IMG/VR virus record: IMGVR_UViG_3300047445_000186
Location: 124,001 to 188,000 of that record
Reading direction: 5' to 3' (one strand)
Length of the DNA stretch: 64,000 nucleotides
Shown: positions 11,256-54,329 of the stretch, in pieces
Layout: each line of letters starts with the position of its first letter
Position numbering within the stretch: the stretch's first letter is position 1
Made by a program: the position numbers and the translations under genes
Notes under the pieces: model-generated
What the model was told of the DNA's origin: nothing
Databases searched by the model: none
The model's input: the letters and a program-made list of their open reading frames with translations, nothing else

Positions 11256-12211
11256 AAAACATAATCAAGACATTTGAGCCGAACACGAAGGGGAGAGACT
11301 TCGTGATCGGTGATTTGCATGGTGCAATCTCTTGCCTGCGCAATCTAATGAAGAATCTGAACTTCGACCCTGCGGTCGATCGGATGTTTTCAGTTGGGGA
11401 CCTTGTTGATCGTGGTGAAGACAGCTTGGCCTGCCTTCGTCTCCTTCGCGAGCCGTGGTTCTGTGCTGTTCTGGCGAACCACGAGCAGATGATGTACGAG
11501 GCGTTCAACGGTGGTTGGATGGGATCGTACTGGTACCAGAACGGCGGTGGGTGGGGGTACAACTCTGCCTTGTTCGCCGATGCACTCAAGAAGCGCGATA
11601 GGGACCCCGAGTACCCCCTGCCTGCAATGACTGATGAGGACTATGAACTCATTGATCTATTGCCCCTGGTGGAGGAGATGCCATTCCTGATCACGATCAA
11701 TATGACCGATGGTCGGAAGTTCCACGTGCTTCATGCTGAGCTGCCGCCAGGTCACATTGGTCTGACGGACTCGGATCTGAGCTCGCCAGGTCGAGTGAAG
11801 GAGCTCGCAACGATTCAAGCCGGTGACGGTGACGCGTTCATGTGGAGTCGGTTCATCTTCGGCCCGTTCAACGGTGCGAATCTGATTGATCAGCGTAACA
11901 AGGTCATTCGAACTGTGCAGTTCCGATTCAAGGGTTCGACAGGTCCGTTCAATGATAAGCTCTCGCACATTATCAGCGGGCACACGATCATGCGCGCTCC
12001 GTTCACCCTGTTCGGACAGACGAACATCGACACGTGCGCGTACGCGACTGGTGACAAGGAACCGCCGAAGTACGCGGCCCTGACATGCGTGGAACTTGGA
12101 AGCTGGTCGTTCTATCAGGCAACCCCGACCACGTTCAGAACTGTGGAGCCGTTCGTCGTAAATACCGACGTAATCAATTCTCTGAAAGAACCAAATGAAG
12201 CTCCTCTCTGA
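11252..12211 (+). CDS. Metallophosphoesterase, NinI/PphA-like Ser/Thr protein phosphatase
   Basis: GDLHG, GDLVDRG, NHE, GHT motifs. Confidence 0.88.
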   Translation: MKNIIKTFEPNTKGRDFVIGDLHGAISCLRNLMKNLNFDPAVDRMFSVGDLVDRGEDSLACLRLLREPWFCAVLANHEQMMYEAFNGGWMGSYWYQNGGGWGYNSALFADALKKRDRDPEYPLPAMTDEDYELIDLLPLVEEMPFLITINMTDGRKFHVLHAELPPGHIGLTDSDLSSPGRVKELATIQAGDGDAFMWSRFIFGPFNGANLIDQRNKVIRTVQFRFKGSTGPFNDKLSHIISGHTIMRAPFTLFGQTNIDTCAYATGDKEPPKYAALTCVELGSWSFYQATPTTFRTVEPFVVNTDVINSLKEPNEAPL

Positions 12212-12389
12212 AGCTACTGTTGACACGCAATTCACTGCTCTGATGGACAAAATCCAGCAAGCGATCATCAAGCTCGAGGGCTTCGTTGGCGAAGATTTCG
12301 TTCCGCTGAACTCGCAAGTTCTGATGGTCGAAGTTGCTGGTGAAGATCTGTCGAAGCTCGCAAAGAAGCTGAAGGCGCAGCGCGGATAA
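12195..12389 (+). CDS. Small late protein (possible head-internal)
   Basis: TAAATA at 12159; MKLLSEA N-terminus. Confidence 0.55.
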   Translation: MKLLSEATVDTQFTALMDKIQQAIIKLEGFVGEDFVPLNSQVLMVEVAGEDLSKLAKKLKAQRG

Positions 12390-12595
12390 TGACCAAGGAA
12401 CTTCGGTTCCCCTGCTCACCTGAACAAGAGGACGTGATTGCTGATCACGTCCTTTTAGGGACTGAGCTTGGGATGCAACCAGATGAACGCGCCTGGATTC
12501 TGAGTCACGCCAGAAAAGTGTATCCAGAAGGCAAGGTTACAGCGGCCGATCTCGATATCGAGAATGGTCAGTGGGTCGTGCAGATTCAATCGTAA
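12389..12595 (+). CDS. Hypothetical protein
   Basis: TAATG coupling. Confidence 0.55.
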   Translation: MTKELRFPCSPEQEDVIADHVLLGTELGMQPDERAWILSHARKVYPEGKVTAADLDIENGQWVVQIQS

Positions 12596-12645
12596 CCAAG
12601 ATCCCTGGACGGCCACTTCCACTCAAATCTTACAATAGCTTTATC

Positions 12646-12810
12646 ATGTCGAAACAACCGCGTACTACCAAGATCAAGCTCCCTAAAGAGCGAAATCAAA
12701 AGCTGCACCAAGATCTTCTTGGCTGCAAGGGTGGTCGTATGCGTGACAAGAAACGTGAAGCTCAGCAAACCCCAGATCGCCGCATTGACGGCGACACTTT
12801 AACTTTTTGA
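12646..12810 (+). CDS. Small basic hypothetical protein
   Basis: TACAAT upstream; MSKQPRTTKIKLPKERN. Confidence 0.45.
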   Translation: MSKQPRTTKIKLPKERNQKLHQDLLGCKGGRMRDKKREAQQTPDRRIDGDTLTF

Positions 12811-12818
12811 TTCTTTAC

Positions 12819-13217
12819 ATGCTTCCCATTCTCGCTCTCGAAGACCTGACCTCTGACGCCACGATCCTGTTCACGCGTGCATTGCTGAACAAGGAAGTGT
12901 CCTGCTTTGGAGAAGACGGAAATGGTCTTCATGGCACGAACGACCGTGCAAAGTTCTTCACGGTCGATAGCCTCCGCGTTATCATCAACGAAGACATCGA
13001 TGAAAACCTGACCGGCATTCTGCAGTTCCATCTGGATGGTTATCACGAAGCACAGTGCGGTGCTGCCGTGACGGACAACAATCTCCGCATTTCCCTGAAC
13101 AAACTGTTCGCAGCCGAGATCATCGACTCCAAAGACTGGTCTTGGGCTCCTCTGAAAGATCAAGGTGACGAATTCGTCGCGATCAATTTCGACGTCTATA
13201 AAGTCCTGGGCTGGTAA
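12819..13217 (+). CDS. Hypothetical acidic protein
   Basis: ORF track. Confidence 0.55.
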   Translation: MLPILALEDLTSDATILFTRALLNKEVSCFGEDGNGLHGTNDRAKFFTVDSLRVIINEDIDENLTGILQFHLDGYHEAQCGAAVTDNNLRISLNKLFAAEIIDSKDWSWAPLKDQGDEFVAINFDVYKVLGW

Positions 13218-13397
13218 GCTCTTTTGCAAGCACGATTGGTGCTTCATTGGTCTGACGTACGAACCTTTGGACAAGCCTGAACTTCACGTTCACGTTTGTT
13301 CAAGGTGCCGGAAAGTGAGTACGGTCGAGATCCCGAATTCGGAGTCCCGTCCTCGCTCCTAAGTCAGTACAATCACAGAACTTTTGGAGAATAAGAA

Positions 13398-16310: not shown

Positions 16311-16554
16311 AAATTCCGCATGTCAGAATTTTGGCTAGGCTTTGTCGTTGGTGCGGTGGCTGTCATAACACCACCGTTCCTCGTGTACGAGTGCCTTCGC
16401 AGGATCAAGCGAGCGAATCCAAACATGTGAATTAGTTAACACTTTCGCACCTTGCTCATCCCGCGTTACACAATCCACGTGTATCTTGTTGTACAATCAC
16501 CTATCAGCACAATGATGTGGTGAAATTAGTTCAACAACGAAAAAGGTTTTGTAA

Positions 16555-17412
16555 GTGAAAAAGATTCTTTTGGCAGTCGCTCTGACCCTGAGCATGGGCC
16601 TCGCATTCGCAGGCAACGGCCATGGCAATGATAAGACCCCGACGATCGGGAACAACGGCGGCGGGAACGGTGGTTGCGGTGTCGGCCAGCAGACGAATGG
16701 TTGTGGTAACACCGTCCCGCCAGTTGTGGTGCCTCCAGTTGTGGTGCCTCCAGTTGTGGTGCCTCCAGTTGTGGTGCCTCCAGTTGGCAACGGTGGTCAC
16801 AACGGCCATGGCGGCGGCGGTCACGCGCACTCCCATGTTCCGCAGCCGCCGATTCTGATCCCTGGTCAGACCGGGCCGCAAGGCATCCCTGGTGTCGGTA
16901 CTCCGGGTGACACAGGAGCGACTGGAGCGACGGGCGCCACTGGTGCGCAAGGCGCCCCTGGTGTCGGCCTCGCTGGTGACACTGGTGCGACCGGAGCCAC
17001 TGGTGCAACGGGTGCTGCTGGTGTCGGCACTCCGGGTGCGGCCGGCGCCGAAGGCAAGGCTGGTGCGAATGCTCCGGATGCAGTCACTGCACAGCAACTC
17101 GACAGCTCGATCGTTGCATCGCAGAAGGTGAACCAAGCGCAGATCAACAGCTTGCGTGAACAGGTCGAGTCGAACGCGAAGGCCGCTTACGCTGGTACCG
17201 CCGCTGCTCTCGCGCTCCAAATGCCTGCTCTGAATCCGAACAAGCCCGATGCCACGACCGTTCGCCTTGGTGTTGGCTCGTACAAGGGTCAGTCCGCCGT
17301 TGGTATCAGCTTCCGTCGCGGCAACAAGGACGGTGACTGGTCGGTCTCGGGCGGTGTGTCTACCACGTCGCAAGGTACTGGCGTTGCAGTCGGAGTCGAG
17401 CACTCGTTCTGA
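16555..17412 (+). CDS. YadA-like trimeric autotransporter adhesin with collagen-like and (PPVVV)n stalk
   Basis: Signal peptide, Gly-X-Y repeats, AYAGTAAALA...GVGSYKGQSAVGIS...C-terminal F anchor. Confidence 0.88.
   Translation: MKKILLAVALTLSMGLAFAGNGHGNDKTPTIGNNGGGNGGCGVGQQTNGCGNTVPPVVVPPVVVPPVVVPPVVVPPVGNGGHNGHGGGGHAHSHVPQPPILIPGQTGPQGIPGVGTPGDTGATGATGATGAQGAPGVGLAGDTGATGATGATGAAGVGTPGAAGAEGKAGANAPDAVTAQQLDSSIVASQKVNQAQINSLREQVESNAKAAYAGTAAALALQMPALNPNKPDATTVRLGVGSYKGQSAVGISFRRGNKDGDWSVSGGVSTTSQGTGVAVGVEHSF
16720..16785 (+). repeat. Perfect 15-bp tandem repeat CCAGTTGTGGTGCCT x4.4
   Basis: Read directly; encodes PVVVP repeats. Confidence 0.95.
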
Positions 17413-17432
17413 TCTGACCTGATCGCTCCCTG

Positions 17433-17458
17433 AAGGCCTGCCTCGTGCAGGCCTTTTT
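17433..17458 (+). terminator. Rho-independent terminator
   Basis: AAGGCCTGC-CTCGT-GCAGGCCTT + TTT. Confidence 0.8.
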
Positions 17459-17512
17459 AGTTTGTCCCATTCGTGGGACGAGGGGGCGTTCAGTTCCGAG
17501 TACAATACGGAT

Positions 17513-17944
17513 ATGGGCATGATTAAGATTTACGCGGGCAAATCAAAGCCCGCAAAGAAGAAACCAGGCTGGAAAGAAGCGGAAGCTGAACACCAGGCCT
17601 GGTTGAAGAGCGTGAACTCGATGTCGAGCGGTTTCCTGAGTGGTATCCAGTCGAAGGGCCGCGGACTTCGTGGAAAGAAGATCGATCCGGTCGTTGTACC
17701 GGTCGCGAATGCACGTGGGGCTGCTCCAGTCGGACGGTCCCTGGCGACACCAGGAGGGTCTACAGGCACACGGTACGTCGCGCCTGAGGTGCTATACAAG
17801 GAAAGTCCGGAGATGCTCCAGCGTGAACTGGCAGCACGAGAACGAAAGTTCAATGCAGCTCCAGCTTACAACAAGGGCGGTGACGTCCTGATGACAGACG
17901 ACATGATGGCCGACATGATGGCAGGAAAGTTACGACGCAGATGA
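17513..17944 (+). CDS. Conserved basic phage protein
   Basis: C-terminal APAYNKGG motif; TACAAT-N6-ATG. Confidence 0.65.
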   Translation: MGMIKIYAGKSKPAKKKPGWKEAEAEHQAWLKSVNSMSSGFLSGIQSKGRGLRGKKIDPVVVPVANARGAAPVGRSLATPGGSTGTRYVAPEVLYKESPEMLQRELAARERKFNAAPAYNKGGDVLMTDDMMADMMAGKLRRR

Positions 17945-18276
17945 CAAATCAAGAATTCGCAAAGCGCCTGATCGAGATCGCTCGTGTTTACGGGTGGTCG
18001 GGCGACTACATCGAGATCAGCGAGTTCGTGCTGTACGTCGCGAACCGATGCGGTGTTCCGACGACGCACGACGATGTTCAGCCATACGAGTTCGAGACTG
18101 ACGCCGAGCTCGATGCATTCGAAGACAAGACTTTCAACGAGGTAAATCATGAAGCTGAACGAACTGGTGAATGTCCAAACGCTGGAAGCTGTGCAGAAAG
18201 CTGTGCAAAACTCCCAGAAGCTGCTGGCCGCGGCGGACTTCTTGGCGGACAACTCACCCGAGGTTCTGGCTGCTGA
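17941..18276 (+). CDS. Hypothetical protein
   Basis: ATGA coupling; 3' end overlaps next gene. Confidence 0.45.
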   Translation: MTNQEFAKRLIEIARVYGWSGDYIEISEFVLYVANRCGVPTTHDDVQPYEFETDAELDAFEDKTFNEVNHEAERTGECPNAGSCAESCAKLPEAAGRGGLLGGQLTRGSGC

Positions 18277-18415
18277 ACAAGCGGTGTACGAGCTATGGAA
18301 AATCGATCCGAAAAAAGCGCAAGCCCTGTGGGAGGAAGCGTTCCCACCTGCCCCGAAGGGTGTGACTCCGTCGTTCATCCACCGGAAGGCGATGTCGGAG
18401 GGCCTTCCGTCCTGA
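18149..18415 (+). CDS. Hypothetical protein (MKLNELV N-terminus)
   Basis: SD GAGG. Confidence 0.55.
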   Translation: MKLNELVNVQTLEAVQKAVQNSQKLLAAADFLADNSPEVLAAEQAVYELWKIDPKKAQALWEEAFPPAPKGVTPSFIHRKAMSEGLPS

Positions 18416-18618
18416 AGACCTTGCGATCGCTGGCAGATGGAGTCTTGAATGGTGATCTGCCAGCGTCAGCAGCGAAGGACATTGCGAAAGAGCGAGTAAA
18501 GGTTTGCGAGTCGTGCGTGCACTTCACGTCGATCAGTCGCCAATGCAGACTCTGCTGGTGCTTCATGGATCTGAAATCGAAGATGCTCTCTGCAACCTGT
18601 CCTGCGAAGAAGTGGTAA
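18295..18618 (+). CDS. Small Cys-rich (Zn-binding) protein; true start probably downstream
   Basis: RVKVCESC...CRLCWCFM...CPAKKW. Confidence 0.55.
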   Translation: MENRSEKSASPVGGSVPTCPEGCDSVVHPPEGDVGGPSVLKTLRSLADGVLNGDLPASAAKDIAKERVKVCESCVHFTSISRQCRLCWCFMDLKSKMLSATCPAKKW

Positions 18619-19139
18619 TGTTTTTCCTCGAGCAGTCAATCACGAAACCTTACTGGGAGCCAACGCAAGAGTACATCTGGCGCAGGATCAGGAATGGAAA
18701 GTACGCTGACGTTGGAAAAACCGGCGTCGTGAAAATTATCGGTGGGAAACAGACTGTGACGTTCGCGATTCACGATCATGGTTTCCCAGTCGCTTGGTTG
18801 TACCTTCGTGCTCGACCCGGTTGGAGGGCTCATGAGGTCCATCAAGCGTTCACGCTGAAGAAGTACCGAGGTCAAGGGCTCGCTCAGAGGTTGTACAAAG
18901 CCGCGATAAACACTGACGGAATTCTTCTTGCAAGCGGTGAAACGCACACGAAGTATTCCGCAGCGCTCTGGAAGAAGTTCATCGCCAAGAAGCAGTTCAA
19001 CATCTGGGCGCATGACTTCAAGAACACGAGATCGACGAGTACAGTCGAGGTAGAGGACGGCGAGATTCAGTGTGCTCTGCCGATCTATTTGTTGTCCGCA
19101 AAATACGACGTTAGATTCGTCGCAGAAAGAAAAAGATGA
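18618..19139 (+). CDS. GNAT-family acetyltransferase
   Basis: KYRGQGLAQRLY acetyl-CoA-binding motif A. Confidence 0.7.
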   Translation: MFFLEQSITKPYWEPTQEYIWRRIRNGKYADVGKTGVVKIIGGKQTVTFAIHDHGFPVAWLYLRARPGWRAHEVHQAFTLKKYRGQGLAQRLYKAAINTDGILLASGETHTKYSAALWKKFIAKKQFNIWAHDFKNTRSTSTVEVEDGEIQCALPIYLLSAKYDVRFVAERKR

Positions 19140-19831
19140 ACTTTGCTCCGCTCCATGTCGGTACCCCGACGTACAACGCAATCGAGACCGTCTCTGGCCG
19201 GTACTTCGACCCGGTGAAACCAGATCCGGCTCAGATCGACATCAATGACATTGCATGGGCTCTGTCCCGTCAAGCTCGATTCGCTGGGCACACGATCGGT
19301 GAACCGTACTACGTTGCTCAGCATTGCCTGCTCGTCGATACGATCGTTGATTACGTGGGCTCGGACGACTCGACTGGAGCTGCGCGGAAATCGCACCGTT
19401 GGTGGTTGGAAGATCGTGGACATAATGTCAGCGATGTTCGGATCAATCACGTGGCAATGGGCGCACTGATGCATGACGCAAGCGAAGCGTACCTGATCGA
19501 TCTGCCATCGCCAATCAAGCGTCATCCTGATCTTCGTGCACCGTACAAGGAGCTCGAGAATCGAGTGCAAGCCGTGATCGCGGAAGCGCTGGAGCTGCCT
19601 GAGCTGAACGAGGCTGAGCTGTGCTCGATTGAATGGGCGGACCTGGTTGCCCTGCAAGTCGAAGCAGTTCACCTGATGCCGTCCCGTGGCCGAGGCTGGG
19701 GCAATGATCTGCCACAGATCACGTTCGACGATCATGCTCTGTTCGAGCAACCCAAGAAGTGGAGAACTGTCCAGACGGAGTTCCTCGCTCGGTATGACAG
19801 AATCAAGACAGACTTGTTCTTGGCAAGGTGA
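19136..19831 (+). CDS. HD-domain phosphohydrolase (YfbR-like 5'-deoxynucleotidase)
   Basis: DIAWALS..RFAGH..VAQH..ALMHDASEAY..DLPSPIK. Confidence 0.85.
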   Translation: MNFAPLHVGTPTYNAIETVSGRYFDPVKPDPAQIDINDIAWALSRQARFAGHTIGEPYYVAQHCLLVDTIVDYVGSDDSTGAARKSHRWWLEDRGHNVSDVRINHVAMGALMHDASEAYLIDLPSPIKRHPDLRAPYKELENRVQAVIAEALELPELNEAELCSIEWADLVALQVEAVHLMPSRGRGWGNDLPQITFDDHALFEQPKKWRTVQTEFLARYDRIKTDLFLAR

Positions 19832-19864
19832 GAGTTATACAGGCATTAGGTGACAGATAGCGTT

Positions 19865-19888
19865 CAGCCTCCTTCGGGAGGCTGTTTT
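19865..19888 (+). terminator. Rho-independent terminator
   Basis: CAGCCTCC-TTCG-GGAGGCTG + TTTT. Confidence 0.85.
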
Positions 19889-19936
19889 GTTTCCGGAACA
19901 CGCTAAATAACGAATCATCTGCCCAGGAGACTTTAG

Positions 19937-20272
19937 ATGTCTGATTTGACCCGCCTTCGTGAACTCGCTGCTCTGCTCCGTCCTAAGGAACAAGTCGTCG
20001 AAGACACGCGTACTCAATCCGCTACTGATGCATTCGACGGTATCAAGTCGATCGTTGAGGACGCACTTGGTGATCTCGAAGACAAGCTCGGCGAAGGTGG
20101 TTCGCTTGAGACGCTTCTCGACAAGCAAGGTCTGACCGACCTGGATAAAAAGGCTGACGGTGATGGCGCTACGATGCTGCACCGCCTGGCTGTTCGCACG
20201 GAACAGTACAAGAAGGAAGTTTCCGACGTCCTGCTTGAAATTGAGCTGATGCTCGTTTCCGACGGTAAGTAA
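19937..20272 (+). CDS. Late protein, candidate head-internal
   Basis: TAAATA 19904, SD AGGAG; MSDLTRLRELAAL. Confidence 0.65.
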   Translation: MSDLTRLRELAALLRPKEQVVEDTRTQSATDAFDGIKSIVEDALGDLEDKLGEGGSLETLLDKQGLTDLDKKADGDGATMLHRLAVRTEQYKKEVSDVLLEIELMLVSDGK

Positions 20273-21162
20273 TGAACTTCCGCCAGCTGAATGAAACCGA
20301 CGGTGGGTTCGATTATTCGGGCCGCACCGCTGCAGGGATCGACAAGATCGGTGCCCTTGCAAAGCACGTCGTGAATAAGTTCGCGGGTGCAGCAGCTGGC
20401 GCGAAGTACGGTCTTCAGCGCGATCAAGCGATTGCCGCGAAAGACCAGGCAAAAGACCAAGCGAAAGCTGGTGCTGATGCAGAGGCTGAACAAGCCATGA
20501 ACACCCCAGGGTTTGCCTCGTTCACTGACGTGAACACAGCGCAAATCACGATCGCCGGTTTGATCGTTGATGCTGAACCCCGTGAAGGTGTGCAGATCGC
20601 TCCGTTCGAAAGCTTGAATGCTGCGCACTTCTTGAATGCTCAGAAAGCAGTTGAAGTGATGCAGAAGCGCTTTGACAAGTTCATGAAGGAACTCGTTGCA
20701 GACATTCGCTCTGCCTCGTACATCAAAGACTACGAGAAGAACGAAGTTCAAGAGCGCTTTGAAGACACGAATCCAAAGCGTGAAGCGAACTCCGAAGAGC
20801 TGCTCCATAAGAACGGATACGGCGAGCGGAATGCATGGATGCTCGCTCTGACGAGAGATGACCCGAACATCGGTACACGCGCGATCGTGCAGATGATCGG
20901 CAAGATCTCGAAAGACCACGAAGACAAGAATGGCTCTGGCGCTGACAAGACGAAGTACTTTGCCACTGGTTTGAACCTGGTGAACGTCGCCGGTTTCCAG
21001 ATGCGCGCAGTTCAATCTCGTCTGGAAGGCGTGATCGCAATGCTTGATGAGCTCGAGAGCGAGCCACGTCAAGAGACCGCTCCTGCAGAGAAGCCTGGCG
21101 CTGATCAAGTTGATCACGCGCAGAACAAAGAAGTCCTGACGGGTCTTCGCAAGTACAAGTAA
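20272..21162 (+). CDS. Late protein, candidate head-internal
   Basis: MNFRQLNE N-terminus; TAATG coupling. Confidence 0.65.
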   Translation: MNFRQLNETDGGFDYSGRTAAGIDKIGALAKHVVNKFAGAAAGAKYGLQRDQAIAAKDQAKDQAKAGADAEAEQAMNTPGFASFTDVNTAQITIAGLIVDAEPREGVQIAPFESLNAAHFLNAQKAVEVMQKRFDKFMKELVADIRSASYIKDYEKNEVQERFEDTNPKREANSEELLHKNGYGERNAWMLALTRDDPNIGTRAIVQMIGKISKDHEDKNGSGADKTKYFATGLNLVNVAGFQMRAVQSRLEGVIAMLDELESEPRQETAPAEKPGADQVDHAQNKEVLTGLRKYK

Positions 21163-38952: not shown

Positions 38953-38986
38953 CGTAAATAAGGCTGACTTAATTTAAGATTCAGCC

Positions 38987-39958: not shown

Positions 39959-39969
39959 GGTATACAATC

Positions 39970-42100: not shown

Positions 42101-42720
42101 AAATCAAAGAACTCCTGACCCTTCGTGAGGCTCCGCAAGAGGAGTCTTTTGAAGCGTACATTGATCGCCTTCAAGCAATGGGCTTGAATCCGCTTGGTAA
42201 CGGTACGAATTCGTACGTGTTCAAGCACCCAACACTGCCAAACGTCGCTGTCAAAATCTTCCTTGACGACGATCGCGGGTACCGTGATTACCTCGAGTTC
42301 TGCATCAAGCATCCGTCGAACAAGTACTGCCCGAAGGTCTTTGAGACCGACGAGTTCTCTGAACAGCGTCGTACAAAGTACTTCACGAAGGAACTGCACG
42401 CGAACTGGAACGTCGCGCGCAGCGATAACGAGCCGTACTCGATCACCTTCCTTGAAAAATTAGATCCAATCACCAATGAGGCGATGGACTCAATGTTCGA
42501 GCGTCTTGGCAAGATCGCTGGTAAGAAGCTTGGAGCTCTCGCCAATCTCGGTGCTGATGGCTGGACAGCTATTGCAGCTGACGGCAATGATCATGATCTG
42601 CAGCAGCTTGCTCAGTACTTCGTCAGCGAGCTCAAGAACGGTCACAAGCTCGACATGGGCAATCGGAAGAACTTCTGTCTGCGCGGCGATCAATTCGTTT
42701 TCATTGATCCCTTCTTTTGA
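42097..42720 (+). CDS. Protein kinase-like protein
   Basis: LGNGTNSYVF Gly loop, VAVKIF, LD....NF, FIDP. Confidence 0.65.
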   Translation: MKIKELLTLREAPQEESFEAYIDRLQAMGLNPLGNGTNSYVFKHPTLPNVAVKIFLDDDRGYRDYLEFCIKHPSNKYCPKVFETDEFSEQRRTKYFTKELHANWNVARSDNEPYSITFLEKLDPITNEAMDSMFERLGKIAGKKLGALANLGADGWTAIAADGNDHDLQQLAQYFVSELKNGHKLDMGNRKNFCLRGDQFVFIDPFF

Positions 42721-43798: not shown

Positions 43799-43874
43799 GG
43801 GTCGTTGACAGAGCGGCAGATGTACCTCCCTCTTAAGGAGATCTAGCAGGGTTCGACTCCCTGGCGACCCACCA
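43799..43874 (+). tRNA. tRNA-Lys(CTT)
   Basis: Cloverleaf, loop CTCTTAA, CCA end. Confidence 0.85.
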
Positions 43875-43879
43875 AACAT

Positions 43880-43990
43880 GCCGAGATAGCACGATGGTCG
43901 TGCACTTTATGTAAGAGCGAGTGTCTACGGGAAACACGGCACTTGACAGAAAAGAAACGGATGGTGGTTCAAATCCATCTCTTGGCGCCA
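43880..43990 (+). ncRNA. tRNA-like RNA with extended anticodon arm and no anticodon loop
   Basis: Acceptor GCCGAGA/TCTTGGC-GCCA, D arm, TTCAAAT T-loop; ~50-nt irregular hairpin in place of anticodon arm. Confidence 0.7.
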
Positions 43991-43996
43991 AACAAT

Positions 43997-44072
43997 GGGA
44001 CTTTCGTATAGCTGGTGCGTACGGGAGCTTGAAAACCTTCAGGAAGCGGTTCGATTCCGCTAGGTCCCACCA
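43997..44072 (+). tRNA. tRNA-Phe(GAA)
   Basis: Loop TTGAAAA, CCA. Confidence 0.85.
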
Positions 44073-44076
44073 ATTT

Positions 44077-44151
44077 GCTTCGTTCGACTACCGGTTAGGT
44101 CGCTAGCCTTTCAAGCTGGAGAAACGGGTTCGACTCCCGTACGAAGCACCA
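44077..44151 (+). tRNA. tRNA-Glu(TTC)
   Basis: Loop CTTTCAA, CCA. Confidence 0.9.
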
Positions 44152-44158
44152 GAACAAT

Positions 44159-44237
44159 AGGGTTGAAATCGAAGTGGCACGAGATACATGGCTTTGACCC
44201 ATGGTAATATCAGGTTCGAGTCCTGACAGCCCTGCCA
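44159..44237 (+). tRNA. tRNA-Gln(TTG)
   Basis: CATGG-CTTTGAC-CCATG, CCA. Confidence 0.88.
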
Positions 44238-44242
44238 AACAT

Positions 44243-44320
44243 ATCAGCGTCGTCTAAATGGTCTAGGACATCAGACTTTCAATCTGAGCAATGCGGGTTC
44301 AACTCCCGTCGCTGATGCCA
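44243..44320 (+). tRNA. tRNA-Glu(TTC)
   Basis: TCAGA-CTTTCAA-TCTGA, CCA. Confidence 0.9.
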
Positions 44321-44326
44321 AACAAT

Positions 44327-44401
44327 ACCTTAGTAGCTCAGTGGTAGAGCACCGTCTTGATAAGGCGTAGGTCGTTGGTTCGATTCCAACTTAAGGTACC
44401 A
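44327..44401 (+). tRNA. tRNA-Ile(GAT)
   Basis: Loop TTGATAA, CCA. Confidence 0.88.
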
Positions 44402-44408
44402 GAATAAT

Positions 44409-44482
44409 GGGACGTTCGTATATGGGTATTATGTGGCGCTGTCTACGCTACGAAACGGGTTCGAGTCCCGTACGTCCCGCCA
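44409..44482 (+). tRNA. tRNA-Asp(GTC)
   Basis: TGGCG-CTGTCTA-CGCTA, CCA. Confidence 0.88.
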
Positions 44483-44486
44483 AATT

Positions 44487-44561
44487 CGTGCGGTAGCATT
44501 ATGGTAATGCGCCACCCTCATAAGGTGTCCCAAGTGGGTTCGATTCCCACCTGCACGACCA
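44487..44561 (+). tRNA. tRNA-Met(CAT), elongator-type or Ile2
   Basis: Loop CTCATAA; C1-G72 paired so not initiator-like; CCA. Confidence 0.8.
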
Positions 44562-44573
44562 AGTGTCCTTTGC

Positions 44574-44645
44574 TCCGGTGTAGCTCAGCGGTAGAGCAGC
44601 TCGCTGTTAACGAGTTGGTCGTTGGTTCGATCCCAGCCTCCGGAG
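44574..44645 (+). tRNA. tRNA-Asn(GTT), no encoded CCA
   Basis: Loop CTGTTAA; ends G-CAA. Confidence 0.85.
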
Positions 44646-44661
44646 CAAAGAACATTTCTAT

Positions 44662-44756
44662 TCCCCTGTACTCTAATTGGTAAGAGACCTGGCTGTTAAC
44701 CAGACGTAAAGGCCGTAAGGCGTAATATGCAAGTTCGAAGCTTGCTGGGGGAGCCA
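44662..44756 (+). tRNA. tRNA-Asn(GTT) with long variable arm
   Basis: Loop CTGTTAA; ~25-nt variable region with GCC-GTAA-GGC hairpin; CCA. Confidence 0.78.
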
Positions 44757-44806
44757 AGATTAAGAAACCTTACTCACGCGGTCACTCGCGGTCCCGTAGG
44801 GTTTAT

Positions 44807-44882
44807 GCGCGGTTAGCTCAGTTGGTAGAGCAAACGACCGATAATCGTTAGGTCGCTGGTTCGAATCCAGCACTGCGCACCA
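44807..44882 (+). tRNA. tRNA-Ile(GAT), C at position 33
   Basis: AACGA-CCGATAA-TCGTT, CCA. Confidence 0.88.
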
Positions 44883-44890
44883 CAAATTAT

Positions 44891-44967
44891 GCCTCTTTAG
44901 CTCAACTGGATAGAGCACTGGCCTACGAAGCCGGGGGTTGCAGGTTCGAATCCTGTGAGAGGCACCA
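44891..44967 (+). tRNA. tRNA-Arg(ACG)
   Basis: Loop CTACGAA, CCA. Confidence 0.92.
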
Positions 44968-44973
44968 GAATAT

Positions 44974-45034
44974 TCCGACCGTCAGTGCAAGGTTATCCTT
45001 CTACGATTCCCCCTTGCGCGATCTCTTTGTCGGA
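44974..45034 (+). ncRNA. Y-RNA-like ncRNA inside tRNA array
   Basis: TCCGAC/GTCGGA stem, CCG-N9-GGTTATC, GTGCAAGG/CCTTGCGC stem, 3' ATCTCTTTGT shared with 54929-54985. Confidence 0.7.
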
Positions 45035-45042
45035 CGAAACAT

Positions 45043-45116
45043 AGGTCCTTGGTGTAATGGCAGCATGACGGTCTCCAAAACCGTTCGTGGGGGTTCGAGT
45101 CCCTCAGGACCTGCCA
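45043..45116 (+). tRNA. tRNA-Trp(CCA)
   Basis: ACGGT-CTCCAAA-ACCGT, CCA. Confidence 0.92.
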
Positions 45117-45185
45117 AGATAACGGTGCGTTTAGGAACGGACGCTTAATTGCCAACCCCACATAATCTGGCGGCCGAATAACAAT

Positions 45186-45260
45186 GTGCACTTGACAGAA
45201 TGGTAATGTCGCTGGCTGCAACCCAGTTGTTCGGGGGTTCGATTCCCTCAGTGCACTCCA
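45186..45260 (+). tRNA. tRNA-Cys(GCA)
   Basis: Loop CTGCAAC, U73, CCA. Confidence 0.88.
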
Positions 45261-45416
45261 ATTACGACAGGAGCAAGGCGCCCTCGGGCTTGTGGCTAGC
45301 TGTGGAAAGTGACCCTCCACCTCCAACGTCGTTCCAATCAAAGCTTCGTCGTTCCATTCACACGGGTACGCGACTCCGTTTCTCGCAAGAGGTGCAGGGC
45401 GAAGCAACGCAATTAT

Positions 45417-45489
45417 AGGTGAGCCAGCGGCGCTGGACAAGAGCATCCAAAGCTCGAAGTTGGTAGTTCGACTCTGCCATCGCCTGCCA
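45417..45489 (+). tRNA. Atypical tRNA-Trp(CCA), minimal D arm
   Basis: D arm CCAGC-GGC-GCTGG; loop ATCCAAA; TTCGACT; CCA. Confidence 0.7.
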
Positions 45490-45494
45490 ATTAT

Positions 45495-45566
45495 AGGTGA
45501 TCCATGGGCCGTGGACATGAGCCTCCAAAACTCGTTGGGACAGTTCGACTCTGTCATTGCCTGCCA
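45495..45566 (+). tRNA. Atypical tRNA-Trp(CCA), minimal D arm
   Basis: D arm CCATG-GGC-CGTGG; loop CTCCAAA; CCA. Confidence 0.7.
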
Positions 45567-45574
45567 AAATTTAT

Positions 45575-45650
45575 GGTGTACGTAGTGTAGTGGTCTGCAC
45601 CCTAGGCTGTGAACCTGGTAGTGGGAGTTCGATCCTCCTCGTACACCCCA
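45575..45650 (+). tRNA. tRNA-His(GTG)
   Basis: G-1/C73, loop CTGTGAA, CCA. Confidence 0.9.
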
Positions 45651-45658
45651 GAATATGT

Positions 45659-45731
45659 TGCCTCGTGATATGGAAATCGCCCCTGGCTCTGACCCAGGTG
45701 GATGACGGTTCGATTCCGTCCGGGGTTGCCA
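45659..45731 (+). tRNA. tRNA-Gln(CTG), short D arm
   Basis: CCTGG-CTCTGAC-CCAGG, CCA. Confidence 0.8.
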
Positions 45732-45736
45732 AATAC

Positions 45737-45812
45737 GCCTTGTGAGTGAATGTGGAGAGCACAGCGGTTTCGTATTCCGCAGGACGCAGTTCGACTCTGC
45801 GACAAGGCACCA
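45737..45812 (+). tRNA. tRNA-Thr(CGT)
   Basis: GCGGT-TTCGTAT-TCCGC; GCC acceptor start, A73, CCA. Confidence 0.78.
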
Positions 45813-45819
45813 GAATTAT

Positions 45820-45892
45820 TGGGGTATGACATGGACGTTGGCCTGGGCTTTGACCCCGGTGCCGGTCGGTTCGATTCCGACTACCCTTGCCA
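45820..45892 (+). tRNA. tRNA-Gln(TTG), short D arm
   Basis: CTGGG-CTTTGAC-CCCGG, CCA. Confidence 0.78.
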
Positions 45893-45895
45893 AAC

Positions 45896-45973
45896 ACCGC
45901 ATTAGCTCAACTGGATCAGAGCGTCGCACTCCGAAGGCGACAGATGTGGGTTCGAATCCCATGTGTGGTACCA
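45896..45973 (+). tRNA. tRNA-Arg(CCG)
   Basis: Loop CTCCGAA, CCA. Confidence 0.85.
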
Positions 45974-45980
45974 AAATTAC

Positions 45981-46056
45981 GCCGTCATAGCTCAGTTGGT
46001 AGAGCAGTTCCTTGGTATGGAGAAGGTCAGGGGTTCGATTCCTCTTGACGGCACCA
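45981..46056 (+). tRNA. tRNA-Thr(GGT)
   Basis: Loop TTGGTAT, CCA. Confidence 0.9.
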
Positions 46057-46248
46057 GTTTAGCACATGCTCGGCATGATAACACAGGGTCATTGATCCGG
46101 ACATGTTCGATCTGCGGTCTGACGTAGGAGTACGGCAAAGACAAGCTCGGAACGGGAACTCCCATGTGCTGATTCATTACTTGAAAGGAGCGCGTAATGC
46201 GTACGTCAGTTTCGACGCCTAGCGCGTCTGGTAAACGCCATACACTTT

Positions 46249-46324
46249 GGGTGTATGGCGTAAAGGTTAGCGCATCGGGCTTTTAACCCGTAAGGTCAGA
46301 GTTCGACTCTCTGTGCACCCACCA
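46249..46324 (+). tRNA. tRNA-Lys(TTT)
   Basis: CGGG-CTTTTAA-CCCG, CCA. Confidence 0.9.
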
Positions 46325-48180: not shown

Positions 48181-48444
48181 AATTTCGCGCGATTTTTCTC
48201 ACAAAAATTTCCCACGACGAAAAAAACCGCATGGCGGGAATTCGTTGGGGAATTCACGACGGCAAGAAGTTCCTTCGGTTCGACTTCTGGACCACGAGCT
48301 TTCGAATTACGGGGATGCGATGAAGACAGTGAAAGACATTTTGTTCGTGGCGGCCATGATCCTCTGCATCAGCGGAGTTCTTTACCTGCGGCAGATCTGG
48401 TAGGATGAACTCTCTGTAAATAGTGCATCATTTACGGAGCCGTC

Positions 48445-49602
48445 ATGGAACTTACCAAACTCAAGCAGCTGGCCGAATCTCGCCAGTCCGATTTCAAGTA
48501 CACCGAAAAGCACGTCAAGGGCGCGCTCTCGAAGGTTATCCTCGAGCTGGAAGGTTCGAGCTCCGGTGCGATGTCGCGCTTGATGACTCGTTATCAGCGC
48601 CTCGATCGCTCCGCTAAGCTCCTCGCTGAAAAGCGGAACGAAGTGAACGCGCAAGTCAAGGACGTTGCTGACCGTCTGTTCGATGCCGAAGACGCAGTTG
48701 CTACTCGAATCATCGAGACAATCTCGTACACCGTGATGCTCACGAAGTCCGAGAAGGCTGCTGACAAGGAAGACAAGAAGAAGATCGATTACGAGTCCGC
48801 GTTCGGCGAACTCTCGCGTCTGGTCCCTGATCTCGAAGCTGCCGTGAAGAAGATTATCGAGAAGCACACGGAAATCATTCCAGCGAAGGATACTCCTACC
48901 GCTCTGCGCGTCACATCGAAGATCGCTGAATCCGTTGCTGGAACGATCCTCACGAAGATCAAGAGCTTCGTGACCTCGATCAAGGAATGGGCAACTGGAT
49001 ACGACTCGAAGCTTTCAGCTCTGAAGAAGAAGTTCCCAGTTGGTAAGGTTGTTGCTGAAGCGACCTCGAAGGCATTCGTAAAGAAGACCGACACAGGCGT
49101 GCCATCGACTGCAAAGCAACAGCGCATTGCACGTGACTACTTCGACAAGAAGTTCCCAGACTACGAGCTCCCACTCACGGTCAAGAACGGTCCAGACGGC
49201 TCGAAGTACTTCGCAACGACTGCTTCGACTGACGACTGGGTGACCTCGAAATCCGGCTGCTGCCGCGTAGCCGCTGATGGTACAATCACTGGTGTGACAC
49301 TGAACGCGTTCATGAATCTTCCAACTGCTACCGAAGGAAAGCTGACTGAAGCGGTCGGTTCGAAGAACGTGAAGGAAATTCTGCGTGGTGTGAAGTGGCA
49401 TCAGACAGATAACGACTGGCACTCGGCGAAGAGTGTTGCGCGCGAGATCTTCAAGCAACTCGACGATTCGGATATCGACGTGATGCTCGCTCTGCGAAAT
49501 GCTGCTGAAGTCCAGCGCAAGAAGAATTCGTTCCTCGGCGCTGCTCTGGCTGAACTCGCCAAGGACCAAGCTGAAAAGCTTGGCACCACGAACCGCGACT
49601 AA
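48445..49602 (+). CDS. Late multi-domain protein, candidate head-internal
   Basis: TAAATA 48417; MELTKLKQLAES; internal IAES/VAEA/LTEA sites. Confidence 0.7.
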   Translation: MELTKLKQLAESRQSDFKYTEKHVKGALSKVILELEGSSSGAMSRLMTRYQRLDRSAKLLAEKRNEVNAQVKDVADRLFDAEDAVATRIIETISYTVMLTKSEKAADKEDKKKIDYESAFGELSRLVPDLEAAVKKIIEKHTEIIPAKDTPTALRVTSKIAESVAGTILTKIKSFVTSIKEWATGYDSKLSALKKKFPVGKVVAEATSKAFVKKTDTGVPSTAKQQRIARDYFDKKFPDYELPLTVKNGPDGSKYFATTASTDDWVTSKSGCCRVAADGTITGVTLNAFMNLPTATEGKLTEAVGSKNVKEILRGVKWHQTDNDWHSAKSVAREIFKQLDDSDIDVMLALRNAAEVQRKKNSFLGAALAELAKDQAEKLGTTNRD

Positions 49603-49610
49603 AGATACAT

Positions 49611-49687
49611 GCCTCTGTAGCACAACTGGATAGTGCAGCCCTCTTCTAAAGGGTCCGTTGTAGGTTCAAATCCTATCAGAGGTACCA
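49611..49687 (+). tRNA. tRNA-Arg(TCT), orphan
   Basis: GCCCT-CTTCTAA-AGGGT, CCA. Confidence 0.9.
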
Positions 49688-51106: not shown

Positions 51107-51127
51107 TCCAGCGAGCTCCATGAACAC

Positions 51128-51197: not shown

Positions 51198-51286
51198 GTT
51201 TAGACATACAGCCACTGTCTCCGTGGTGCTCTCGTGCGGCCTGTGTAAATACAGGGCAGCACGTGCTGCGTTATCTGGAGTTCCCT

Positions 51287-51400: not shown

Positions 51401-51403
51401 ACA

Positions 51404-51910
51404 ATGAAACTGTTCGAGCTTCAAGACCAAACGTTCGGCGTTCCTCGACTGTCGTGGAACAGCTCGCCAGACATCGGTTGGTGGCGTGACGGAAAGGTTC
51501 TCCGCGGCTACCACGGCTCGAACATGAAGTACCTGGAGTCGTTCGCCAAGGACGGTCTGAATCGAAAAGATTCAAGCACTGGCATGATTTCACTTGCTTA
51601 CGAACCATTCACTGCCCGCGCATTCGCTGCGATGGGTGGTGAAGCAGAATTCAGAAAGGCCGGCGCGAAAGCGAAGACCATTCCTGAAAACGAACGCATC
51701 ACTCTTGTTTTTGATATTCCACAATCGTTTGTTCAAAAGTACGAAGACCCAAACCTCCGAGGCAATGACCCAACCCACCTTGCACGTTTGAGAAACAAGG
51801 AAGAGTACGAAGCATGGACAGGTACGGACCAACAGTACTACCAACTCTGCGAGCTTCGTGTCTCGTCAGAAGTCCCCGCAAAGTACCTCGTAGGATACAT
51901 GATTAAGTAA
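51404..51910 (+). CDS. ADP-ribosyltransferase-fold protein (ART/KptA-like)
   Basis: GYHGS...GL...ISLA...A.AFA...ELRV...VP..YL; MKLFEL N-terminus. Confidence 0.6.
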   Translation: MKLFELQDQTFGVPRLSWNSSPDIGWWRDGKVLRGYHGSNMKYLESFAKDGLNRKDSSTGMISLAYEPFTARAFAAMGGEAEFRKAGAKAKTIPENERITLVFDIPQSFVQKYEDPNLRGNDPTHLARLRNKEEYEAWTGTDQQYYQLCELRVSSEVPAKYLVGYMIK

Positions 51911-52043
51911 GCAGAAGGACCTGGTCGATGATCATGGAGAAGGCTTGCTGCAAGACCTAAATACTTTTTAGATCTTTCTCAACCTGAGTACGGGAGCGGT
52001 TCTTACGGATCGCTCCCGTTTTCGCACATATAATCAGATACAA

Positions 52044-52493: not shown

Positions 52494-52521
52494 AAAGAGA
52501 AAGTAGTTCAGGAGAATAAAA

Positions 52522-53118
52522 ATGGCTGGCCATAGAATTTTGAAGTTGGATGTTCAGGGTACCCCTGACAAGTGGATTGATTACGAACAAGCGATTACGT
52601 ACCATGCCAAGGGCCTGGTGGCGTGGCAGCTCGGCGATGAAAATCACACACGCTTCCGTGGCGGTGAAAACCGAATCACAGGCCAGATTTCGCAAATCTC
52701 CTCAGCTCCAATCATTGCTGTGCGCGGCGAAGGCGCTGGAAAGCGCGCGAATCGCGTCCCAACTCTGACGAACCCAGAGCTGTTCGCCCGTGATCGTCAC
52801 ACTTGCGCGTACTGCGGACGCACGTTCTCTGAACATCGTCTGACTCGTGACCACATCATCCCGGTCTCCCGCGGTGGTAAGGACATCTGGACGAACGTCG
52901 TGACTGCTTGCGATTACGACAATCACAAGAAGGACGATCACTTGCTGCAGGAAATCGGCATGGAATTGCTGTACGTTCCGTACACGCCGAATCGCGCTGA
53001 GTCGCTGATCTTGAAGGGTCGTAAGATCCTCCCTGTTCAGGCCGAGTACTTGGCACAGTTCATTCCAGAATCGAGCCGAGCGCATTCGATCCTGAACGAG
53101 TTGATGAACGTTCACTAA
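52522..53118 (+). CDS. HNH endonuclease (McrA-like)
   Basis: RDRHTCAYCG..TRDHIIPVSRGG..WTNVVTAC..NHKK. Confidence 0.9.
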   Translation: MAGHRILKLDVQGTPDKWIDYEQAITYHAKGLVAWQLGDENHTRFRGGENRITGQISQISSAPIIAVRGEGAGKRANRVPTLTNPELFARDRHTCAYCGRTFSEHRLTRDHIIPVSRGGKDIWTNVVTACDYDNHKKDDHLLQEIGMELLYVPYTPNRAESLILKGRKILPVQAEYLAQFIPESSRAHSILNELMNVH

Positions 53119-53122
53119 GGAC

Positions 53123-53156
53123 AAAGGGCTGAGATAAATACGTCTCAGCCCTTTTT
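53123..53156 (+). terminator. Terminator hairpin overlapping a TAAATA late-promoter core
   Basis: AAAGGGCTGAGA-TAAATACG-TCTCAGCCCTTT-TT. Confidence 0.75.
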
Positions 53157-53160
53157 ACTT

Positions 53161-53817
53161 ATGCACATCAATCCTGACACCGCTGTCGTCGAGCTTGGCG
53201 ACGTTCCTCTCGATGAGATCGAGCGAGTTCTTGGCGTGATTGAAACCGACTTCGCCGAGAAGTGGGTCTTCCGCGGTTCGAAGCTCATGAATCAGTCTCG
53301 CGTCTTGAAGGCACGGACGATTTCCGAGTTTGATCTTCTTGCGAAGGAAGATGCTGACGCTCTGTTCGAATTGCTCGAGCCGATGACGCGCCCGTACATG
53401 GGGAAGGACGACAAGCTCGTCTATCTCGATGTCTCGTCGCTTCCGAATTCAGCCGCCTCTGCGCTGCACGTCGATTACCTGTGGATGCAGGCCGTCGCTC
53501 GTCGAATCCGCATTCCAATCAAGACAAATCCGAGAGCACTGTTCGCTACAGTCGACTCGAAGAATGAAGTAACCGTGCACAACTTGAAGGTCGGAAAAGC
53601 GTACAGCACGAACAACATGATCCCGCATTCGGCTGCGAACTACGGTCCAGATCGCTGGCACGTGGTGTTCGATATCCTGACGAATGAAGAGTACGAATTC
53701 CTGACGAAGACAAATCGCATTACAGAAGCAGTGTTCAGCCCGTACGTGAACGCAGCTCTGAATCCAGTCCTGGCGCATCGCTGCCGGACTTTAATGGCTA
53801 AATATCCTGCAAATTAA
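53161..53817 (+). CDS. Asp/Asn beta-hydroxylase-like oxygenase
   Basis: LHVD..RIRIPIKTNP..PHSAANYGPDRWHVVFD. Confidence 0.72.
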   Translation: MHINPDTAVVELGDVPLDEIERVLGVIETDFAEKWVFRGSKLMNQSRVLKARTISEFDLLAKEDADALFELLEPMTRPYMGKDDKLVYLDVSSLPNSAASALHVDYLWMQAVARRIRIPIKTNPRALFATVDSKNEVTVHNLKVGKAYSTNNMIPHSAANYGPDRWHVVFDILTNEEYEFLTKTNRITEAVFSPYVNAALNPVLAHRCRTLMAKYPAN

Positions 53818-53834
53818 CTAACTCTGGTAACGAC

Positions 53835-54329
53835 ATGAAAGTCACTGAACTCCTCACAGAAAAGAAGCATTCCGGCGCTTATTACAACGCTGGCTACGAT
53901 GCAGAAAAGAAGGCCGTTGTCGGCGCTGTTAAGGATTGGGTCGAGCGAATCGGCGCTTCCCCTGAAGACCTGGCTGCTGCTTACCTGGAAGCCAAGAAGC
54001 TTCCTTCGTACAAGGCGCTGACCAAGATCGCTCCAGACATCTCGAACGCGCGCGAAGCAAAGAACGGCACATTCTCGTTCAAGCACCCATCCAAAGCCGC
54101 ACACTCTGAGGCTCCAAAGTACAACGTTCGCGCATCAGGCCAAATTCGTGGATCTGACGCAGGTTCGTACTACTCCCCAGGTACACGCCCAACGCACCGC
54201 CTGGCATCACCAAAGCCACGCCTCGTTGCTGGTAATCCAGTGAAGTCGCTCGTGCTCGTGTACGATGGCGCTTTCAAGGAACTCGTTCTGAAGGCCCAGA
54301 AGGTTATTGCCCGCGACACCGTCAAGTAA
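53835..54329 (+). CDS. Late protein, candidate head-internal
   Basis: TAAATA 53799; MKVTELLTEK. Confidence 0.68.
   Translation: MKVTELLTEKKHSGAYYNAGYDAEKKAVVGAVKDWVERIGASPEDLAAAYLEAKKLPSYKALTKIAPDISNAREAKNGTFSFKHPSKAAHSEAPKYNVRASGQIRGSDAGSYYSPGTRPTHRLASPKPRLVAGNPVKSLVLVYDGAFKELVLKAQKVIARDTVK

Follow-up and report, generated by a model that had tools for sequence, protein, structure and literature searches.

The internal proteins of bacteriophage T4 carry an N-terminal capsid-targeting sequence (CTS) of the type MKTYQEFIAE, which the prohead protease gp21 removes. The first 10 residues of internal protein III suffice for encapsidation, and fusion experiments showed the targeting role of the CTS. 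Positions 4 and 7 are important for targeting and positions 8 and 10 for processing; with Asp at position 10, cleavage is blocked while targeting persists (PMC9026906). The T4 protein Alt, which is also packaged, loses six residues through a cut at ITE-6 (PMC5694885). In the T4 record, the N-termini of the head-core proteins gp67 (MEGLIE), gp68 (MLLIPE), gp21 (..LLIE), gp22 (MLKEQLIAE), gp24 (MAKINELLRE) and Alt (MELITE) all have the pattern hydrophobic-x-Glu (h-x-E) within 6–10 residues. We analyzed a 64,000-nt window, bases 124,001–188,000 of the IMG/VR virus record IMGVR_UViG_3300047445_000186 (331,776 bp, 54% GC, estimated 94% complete), in which a number of genes on the plus strand begin with short leader peptides resembling these T4 sequences. 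There is little doubt in our view that the leaders are real and modular, and they probably represent T4-type capsid-targeting propeptides that exist in two interchangeable versions and serve for capsid targeting and cleavage. Positions below are those of the window unless they are marked as genome positions.

The T4 CTS, the packaged and injected ADP-ribosyltransferase (ART) Alt, head-delivered ARTs and polyvalent effectors are already known. The polyvalent and MuF-fused effectors described by Iyer, Aravind and colleagues resemble the proteins considered here in that myoviruses deliver ARTs, kinases and other modifying enzymes together with their DNA. In contrast, the determinant in the present genome would be a leader of 5–11 residues on separate proteins: the carriers are single-domain proteins of 64–530 residues without a MuF or portal domain, and there is no MuF, portal or giant-polypeptide fusion. 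A second group of comparable systems is found in phiKZ, 201phi2-1 and SPN3US: a protease related to gp21 cleaves their head proteins behind Glu, and many of their ejection proteins undergo processing. The propeptides of those phages usually comprise 50–130 residues and end in S/A/G-x-E with a small residue at P3, whereas here they would be about 10 residues long, with P3 occupied by Leu, Ile or Val, as in T4. In our literature search, no account of CTS-type leaders turned up outside the T-even phages, including this jumbo-phage lineage and metagenomic phages; neither did one of two leader classes exchanging on one cargo or of phosphoribosyltransferase (PRTase) or kinase-like cargo.

The analysis was based on 463 genes, called genome-wide with a model of codon usage and start sites. 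The sequence-only reading of the window had listed 13 genes under a single leader motif. All 13 start codons and N-terminal peptides are correct as it wrote them, and the shared motif does exceed chance, but the list mixes two leader classes with five loose fits, and the GNAT-like gene at 18618 is not a demonstrable member. Class A has the consensus M-K-[LIV]-x-E-L-[FL]-(x)-E, or more briefly and broadly M-[KRL]-[LIV]-x-E-[LI], and tight examples in the window are the genes starting at 18149, 39970, 40485, 42097, 51404 and 53835. Class B, with the consensus M-x-[ST]-F-K-[QD]-F-[LI]-A-E (or, with position 9 left free, M-x-[ST]-F-K-Q-F-[LI]-x-E), is represented in the window by 41222 (MLTFKDFIAA, with F4, F7, I8 and A10) and elsewhere in the genome by the genes at genome positions 28081, 32689 and 49328, where the leaders MISFKQFLAE, MLSFIDFLAE and MEKFEQFLAE occur and F4, F7, L8 and E10 are all present; in all four genes the motif stands at the extreme N-terminus. 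In both classes, Glu comes after hydrophobic residues placed at i, i+3 and i+4. The N-termini of 12195, 19937, 20272, 38987 and 48445 are loose fits and individually indistinguishable from chance.

The strict form MK[LIVMF]xEL heads 11 of the 463 called proteins, six of them in the window, against an expectation of 0.20 when each N-terminal column is shuffled (maximum of 3 in 2000 shuffles), and it occurs at none of 2087 internal Met positions. For the fixed-register form of class A, M-x-[LIVM]-x-E-[LIFM], the count is 20 proteins against 2.65 expected (shuffle maximum 9), with 6 occurrences at the 2087 internal Met positions. In a leave-one-out evaluation with a position-specific scoring matrix, about 20 N-termini scored above every internal-Met control. 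The isoelectric points of the leader-bearing proteins do not differ from those of the rest.

That such a pattern could be an artefact of paralogy, start miscalling or chance is hardly credible. Some material for that explanation exists, since all-versus-all BLASTP pairs up a few carriers as paralogs, the gene caller misplaced the start of the GNAT-like gene, and five of the 13 N-termini are loose. However, the remaining carriers are unrelated, the strict form exceeds expectation as given above and is absent from internal Met positions, and dozens of orthologs from independent assemblies confirm the N-termini. The same pipeline also yielded chance-level motif counts in four control genomes, those of the phages XacN1, RAS14, RaK2 and CBB, so that the leaders are specific to a lineage and the test does not turn out positive trivially. 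RaK2 and CBB, which have deep virion proteomes, do not use the leaders, and these proteomes are no test of the idea. The upstream DNA of the carriers is not conserved and contains no shared nucleotide cassette, the hydrophobic leader positions use Leu, Ile and Val codons interchangeably, and codons vary synonymously; therefore, selection acts on the short peptide. In the AlphaFold2 (AF2) models that were made (51404 and 42097), the leader forms a detached, low-confidence helix at residues 3–8, off the confident domain.

The modularity of the leaders is most visible in orthologs of three cargo families. Among the orthologs of the kinase-like protein 42097, taken from independent metagenome assemblies, five carry class A (such as MKVRELFEA, MKVSELFEA and MKLSQLFEA) and two carry class B (MLSFKQFLKEA and MITFKQYIKEA), with the conserved domain following directly after. 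The PRTase family comprises 36 sequences (35 homologs and the window's own 41222), of which 30 have class B, four have class A (e.g., MKVQELFED) and two have another N-terminus; the class B leaders of this family mostly have Glu at or near position 10. Eight PRTase orthologs (P0019, P0020, P0022, P0024, P0025, P0027, P0032 and P0043) contain an extra domain of about 100 residues, reaching about 380–490 aa; this domain is inserted before the PRTase, and the class B leader is kept at the extreme tip. Finally, the 30 sequences homologous to the ART-fold protein 51404 divide into 19 with class B, nine with class A and two without a leader, one of them a truncated fragment and the other the most distant homolog, which starts in the domain. 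Because two peptides without nucleotide similarity replace each other on three unrelated families, the comparison suggests that classes A and B behave as equivalent functional modules.

Class B leaders extend well beyond the source genome. A scan of IMG/VR for DNA encoding MITFKQF[LF] gave at least 120 stretches, 94 matches of which were analyzed. Among the matches listed, 80 of the 94 lack an upstream in-frame ATG, the upstream stop lies at a median distance of 9 codons, and residue 10, which the search left unconstrained, is Glu in 77 (82%), followed mostly by Ala, Gly, Glu or Lys. After removal of the first 12 residues, the 76 complete proteins fall into at least 33 cargo clusters, some of which are homologous to proteins of the source genome that bear a different leader. 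The same loci also hold N-termini of the form MK[LV]xELFE, at about 10 times the internal-Met rate. Peptidase_S77, the family of the T4-type prohead protease, was detected in 10 of the 14 large leader-bearing records and in four of the five whose completeness is 90% or more.

Within the source genome, the leaders are associated with the hexamer TAAATA. The window contains 21 copies, compared with 4.5 ± 1.8 in dinucleotide-preserving shuffles, and 56 of the 65 plus-strand copies genome-wide are intergenic, although intergenic DNA makes up only 12% of the genome. The hexamer is usually preceded by C or G and mostly ends 20–35 nt before the start codon; among the genes that it precedes are those of the prohead protease and of large fibre-like structural proteins. 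As a promoter-like signal, TAAATA is genuine, and the units behind it are presumably expressed late. Its placement agrees with the sequence-only reading: 5 of the 13 listed genes (12195, 19937, 38987, 48445 and 53835) have a TAAATA of their own, another five (20272, 39970, 40485, 41222 and 42097) lie tightly coupled downstream of one, and none stands directly upstream of 18149 and 18618. At 51404, a copy at 51246–51251 lies 152 nt upstream of the gene, ahead of a 45-codon open reading frame (ORF). That reading named as a refutation a motif no more frequent in TAAATA-driven genes than in early genes, and the counts do not refute it: 15 of the 20 class A genes are in predicted late units, against 79 of the 443 other genes (Fisher p = 1e-7), and a loose h-x-E pattern in the first 11 residues occurs in 25 of the 48 genes with their own TAAATA, against 71 of the 415 others (p = 3e-7).

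This link to one promoter class, together with the A-rich codons (AAA/AAG, GAA) after the ATG in a genome of 54% GC, would also fit a role of the leaders in expression or stability, as a translation-enhancing start region of late mRNAs or as an N-terminal stability or degradation signal. We regard such a role as very improbable. The two classes differ completely in their nucleotides yet interchange, and the amino-acid class is conserved although the Leu, Ile and Val codons vary. An effect on expression also sits poorly with the predominance of Glu at the unconstrained residue 10 in the IMG/VR matches listed, with the near-identity of class B to a T4 peptide whose targeting role was demonstrated by fusions, and with the lack of leaders on those structural late genes for which T4 homologs can be detected (portal, sheath and terminase).

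The machinery that a T4-type propeptide would need is at least partly recognizable in the source genome. It encodes, at genome 5877–6485, a prohead protease of the T4 type, which matches Peptidase_S77 at 93.5 bits and the PHROG head maturation protease at E 5e-56. A major capsid protein of the gp23 type is also encoded, and the source phage is a T4-related jumbo phage. The closest named relatives by capsid protein are Ralstonia phage RsoM2USA (51% identity), Xanthomonas phage Xoo-sp13, Stenotrophomonas phages RAS14 and CM1, and XacN1, with the RaK2/121Q group being more distant; megablast of the window against the deposited phage collection gave no DNA-level match. The capsid proteins of the source phage, RsoM2USA, XacN1 and RAS14 have a common [LI]-[LA]-E/T-A site near residue 39 (here and below, a slash marks the predicted cut), which is aligned with the propeptide region of T4 gp23. 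A putative scaffold at genome 7693, adjoining the protease gene, contains 5.1 [LI]xE per 100 residues, which is the 99.7th percentile of a proteome with a median of 0.94. The probable specificity of the protease can also be read from the phage's own head genes, namely from this capsid site and the scaffold-like protein. A second, 124-residue copy resembling part of the prohead protease is encoded at genome 55738–56112, outside the window; its matches to the gp21 homologs of RsoM2USA, XacN1 and RAS14 have E values of 1e-13 to 1e-16. It recalls SPN3US, for which a diverged protease paralog has reportedly been described.

Based on these features, the following scenario can be proposed. Late in infection, the TAAATA-driven genes would make proteins whose first 5–11 residues form an amphipathic helix followed by Glu, and this helix would dock its protein to the scaffolding core while the prohead assembles. 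After closure of the shell, the gp21 homolog would cut after the Glu of [L/I/V]-x-E, and the mature enzyme would be retained in the head and ejected with the DNA. Class B would be the equivalent of the CTS of T4 internal proteins, and class A that of the N-terminus of Alt and gp24. We infer the docking, cleavage, retention, injection and early action of the cargo; for injection and action before phage gene expression, we consider the chances to be about even.

The correspondence of class B with the T4 CTS concerns its length of about 10 residues at the extreme N-terminus, the aromatic or hydrophobic residues at positions 4 and 7, Ile or Leu at position 8, and Glu at position 10, often followed by Ala. 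It extends to the context, which comprises otherwise unrelated, fast-evolving carriers and a gp21-family protease in the genome, and may include late expression. The consensus here is M-x-[ST]-F-K-Q-F-L-x-E, which differs from the T4 sequence. Unlike the T4 internal proteins, which are small and of inhibitor type, the putative cargo consists mostly of enzymes of 150–530 residues, and unlike the single internal protein locus of T4, the carriers are scattered over the 332-kb genome in several late units. Class A, with h-x-E in the first 5–6 residues followed by L-[FL], is comparable to the propeptides of Alt and gp24 (MELITE/LFDE and MAKINELLRE/). Its cargo 51404 has an ART fold, as does Alt, but it is a single domain of 168 aa with an invariant YHG[ST]...E and no sequence similarity to the Alt catalytic domain, and T4 Alt is also trimmed at its C-terminus.

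Outside the window, two paralogs of 139 and 160 aa with a weak DUF6934 match are encoded at genome 246428–246847 and 253317–253799. Their N-terminus, MLITELFSKDTTL, closely resembles that of T4 Alt and alt.-1, and neither protein has an ART domain; 246428 shares 15 of 30 residues with the Alt N-terminus (pairwise E 4e-4).

Several points weigh against the interpretation of the leaders as capsid-targeting propeptides. XacN1, RAS14, RaK2 and CBB have the same protease family yet no leaders, which indicates that the protease does not require them. Conversely, one complete IMG/VR genome (L136; 103,910 bp, direct terminal repeats, 100% complete) has a leader but no detectable Peptidase_S77; its leader may be a chance match, or the phage may use another protease. 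The second Glu is absent from the leaders of 40485 and 51404, and the PRTase has Ala at position 10. A gp55-type late sigma factor was not found by protein search and two PHROG profiles on the genome, and because of this "late" is deduced from where the motif lies and from its occurrence ahead of structural genes. Near-identical DNA was found solely in rhizosphere metagenome runs, so that the phage is known from rhizosphere metagenomes alone. When the protease was co-folded with residues 1–30 of the kinase-like protein, the score was 0.00, which counts neither way. The remaining difficulties concern class A. It is short and degenerate, and T4 lysozyme e (MNIFEM), which is not a head protein, fits its regular expression, so that specificity per gene is limited.

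The virion data for RsoM2USA also bear on the two classes. This phage has 42 class A N-termini and six genuine class B ones. Its authors assigned ten virion gel bands with LC-MS/MS, with the wording "most likely correspond," and the non-canonical proteins among these ten bands include ORF89 (28.57 kDa) and ORF132 (76.64 kDa) (PMC8504454). As matched by locus tag and mass, ORF89 starts with MKTFKQFLSE and ORF132 with MKTFKQFLNT; thus, two proteins assigned to the bands carry class B, which indirectly supports capsid targeting, and none of the ten is a class A protein. About 35 of the class A N-termini belong to tandem paralogs of about 190–200 residues in the region of about 171–214 kb of RsoM2USA (MG752970.1), all beginning with M[KR]LxEI and without a Pfam match; the RsoM2USA paper does not mention them as a family. 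Such a number of paralogs (about 195 aa each) would be unusually high for head cargo. Together with the degeneracy of class A, this would fit an alternative in which only class B is a true CTS, and class A is another N-terminal module, such as an oligomerisation or partner-binding helix or a tag for a different late assembly or compartment. We nevertheless consider this alternative unlikely, since the mutual replacement of classes A and B on orthologs of three unrelated cargo families argues for an equivalent function. Furthermore, the classes share the pattern of hydrophobic residues and Glu, the cut of T4 Alt and the start of gp24 are in the class A register, and the tie to TAAATA units is strongest for class A.

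If the leaders are indeed capsid-targeting propeptides, the enzymes that carry them are of particular interest. The sequence-only reading proposed that a kinase, a PRTase, an ART and an acetyltransferase are packaged, and the first three identities hold at different levels. The PRTase (41222–42100, 292 aa) is a type I enzyme, with a match to PF00156 of 32.4 bits (cut-off 26.3; E 7e-8) and an intact phosphoribosyl pyrophosphate loop, VVDDVLSSGAT. Beyond its class B leader MLTFKDFIAA, the next L-x-E ends at residue 15. The kinase-like protein (42097–42720, 207 aa), with the class A leader MKIKELLTLRE/A, has a glycine loop, a Lys in VAVK, HxxDxxxxN and an Asp, all invariant in eight sequences, and matches a PHROG protein kinase profile at E 3e-7. 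All top PDB matches of its AF2 model are aminoglycoside phosphotransferases (APH) or eukaryote-like kinases, but at E ~1e-3 and a template modelling (TM) score of ~0.35.

The ART-like protein (51404–51910, 168 aa; MKLFE/L) yielded an AF2 model with a mean predicted local distance difference test score of 89, and its top 50 Foldseek matches in PDB all belong to the ART superfamily. They include Tpt1/KptA and DarT, which are the nearest, as well as Rhs ART toxins and the A chains of the CARDS, pertussis and cholera toxins, and YHG[ST] and E150 are invariant. The matches reach only E ~1e-3 and TM 0.3–0.4, and therefore the ART assignment applies at the fold level only; the protein has no Pfam match, and membership in the Alt/VIP2 clade of ARTs was not found. 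One ortholog lies on a contig of 34% GC (L096), in which the large subunit of ribonucleotide reductase, at 16552–20388, is split and has weak matches to Hint and intein. In other parts of the source genome, two class A proteins have weak ART-PolyVal matches below the cut-off (E 6e-4 and 3.5e-5; 21–25 bits versus 31.2), and the proteins that bear class B leaders include an amidoligase, an AAA ATPase and an HD domain plus P-loop kinase protein.

The proposed acetyltransferase does not belong to this set. For the GNAT-like gene (18618–19139, 173 aa), the start and the N-terminus MFFLEQ were read correctly, and about 40 homologs begin at the equivalent residue; the alternative start at 18543, which the gene caller preferred, was rejected on this ground. 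MFFLEQ, however, is a conserved segment of the family and not a swappable leader: the homologs share M-h-h-L-E-[RQ]-S-I-T-K..YW as one block continuous with the domain, and no class A or class B variant occurs among them. The GNAT match itself is below the Pfam cut-off, and the gene has neither TAAATA nor a modular leader; for this reason, we do not count it as a carrier.

A wider interpretation, which we put forward as somewhat more doubtful than not, is that the leaders are a genome-readable address label that lists the full injected set of a large, mostly uncultivated clade of the T4 superfamily. In the present genome, this set might amount to about 25–35 proteins (5–8% of the proteome), mostly enzymes delivered before phage gene expression. 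The candidates would include the PRTase, the kinase-like protein, as many as three ART-like proteins (with fold-level support for one and weak Pfam matches alone for two), the amidoligase, the AAA ATPase and the HD plus P-loop kinase protein. Proteins that are injected act before phage gene expression and are prime candidates for counter-defence and host takeover. To our knowledge, outside T4 and a few phiKZ-like phages, injected proteins could be found only by virion proteomics of cultured phages. If the leaders work as in T4, a tag of 10 residues would identify injected proteins directly in metagenomic genomes, with the cargo clusters from the IMG/VR scan as a first set. The T4 CTS would then be ancient and portable across hosts and GC contents (a Ralstonia phage and rhizosphere phages of 34–54% GC), and the use of CTS-type tags for protein delivery in phages other than T4 would be supported. 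Free swapping between internal-protein-type and Alt-type leaders would imply that cargo is recruited by simple leader capture. The cargo would also represent new biology, with a packaged type I PRTase and a minimal kinase for which no role in early infection has been described.

The remaining carriers in the window have no assigned enzyme fold. Pfam and PHROG scans of about 40 leader-bearing proteins gave mostly no match, and BLASTP against RsoM2USA, RAS14, XacN1 and T4 found almost no homologs. A TAAATA at 38955–38960, 26 nt upstream of 38987, heads a coupled unit of five genes (38987–42720; spacing of 11 nt or overlapping stop and start codons), which ends with the PRTase and kinase-like genes. 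Its first gene (38987–39958, 323 aa) has the loose leader MAFSLLQEM with LQE at positions 6–8, and residues 6–69 of the protein are similar to residues 130–193 of the class-B-bearing AAA ATPase at genome 32689. The proteins of 38987–39958, genome 32689 and genome 262616 share pieces of an ATPase resembling that of the T4 nrdC region; of the three, one bears class B, another opens with the loose MAFSLLQEM, and the third is leaderless. The second gene of the unit (39970–40485, 171 aa) bears the class A leader MKIQELLSE/G, with h-x-E sites at residues 3–5 and 7–9, and the third (40485–41222) encodes a basic protein of 245 aa with the class A leader MKLFEL...DLE/A. Another basic protein of 164 aa (53835–54329; class A, MKVTELLTE/K) lies 30 nt behind its own TAAATA at 53799–53804. 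The ESM Atlas look-alikes of 40485 and 53835 all scored below 0.7, and the models were poor; the sole lead for 40485 in the Atlas, an "IpIV internal head protein," was below the threshold.

The loosely fitting leaders stand behind other copies of TAAATA. In the segment 12159–12389, the hexamer (12159–12164) is followed by a gene for a protein of 64 aa starting with MKLLSE/A, a loose, shifted class A form that scores above all internal-Met controls in the position-specific matrix. In 19904–21162, it (19904–19909) precedes the coupled genes 19937–20272 (MSDLTRLRE/L) and 20272–21162 (MNFRQLNE/T), both with a loose h-x-E. In 48417–49602, it (48417–48422) is followed by the gene for a basic, helix-rich protein of 385 aa with MELTKLKQLAE/S, where LAE at residues 9–11 resembles IAE-10 of T4; a homolog of this protein in a related contig starts with MYLPQLQLLAE/A behind its own TAAATA. 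The 88-aa protein encoded at 18149–18415 (class A, MKLNEL) is coding by codon score and has no TAAATA. Its gene overlaps the 3' tail of the ORF 17941–18276 by 128 nt in another frame. That ORF loses its coding signal near 18125, where 18149 begins, and a real overlap, an assembly indel or a frameshift are possible. Finally, a dense array of 19 tRNA genes, in which the Glu, Ile, Asn, Lys, Thr and Arg species are duplicated, separates two late units at 43799–46324, and one further tRNA-Arg gene is located at 49611–49687.

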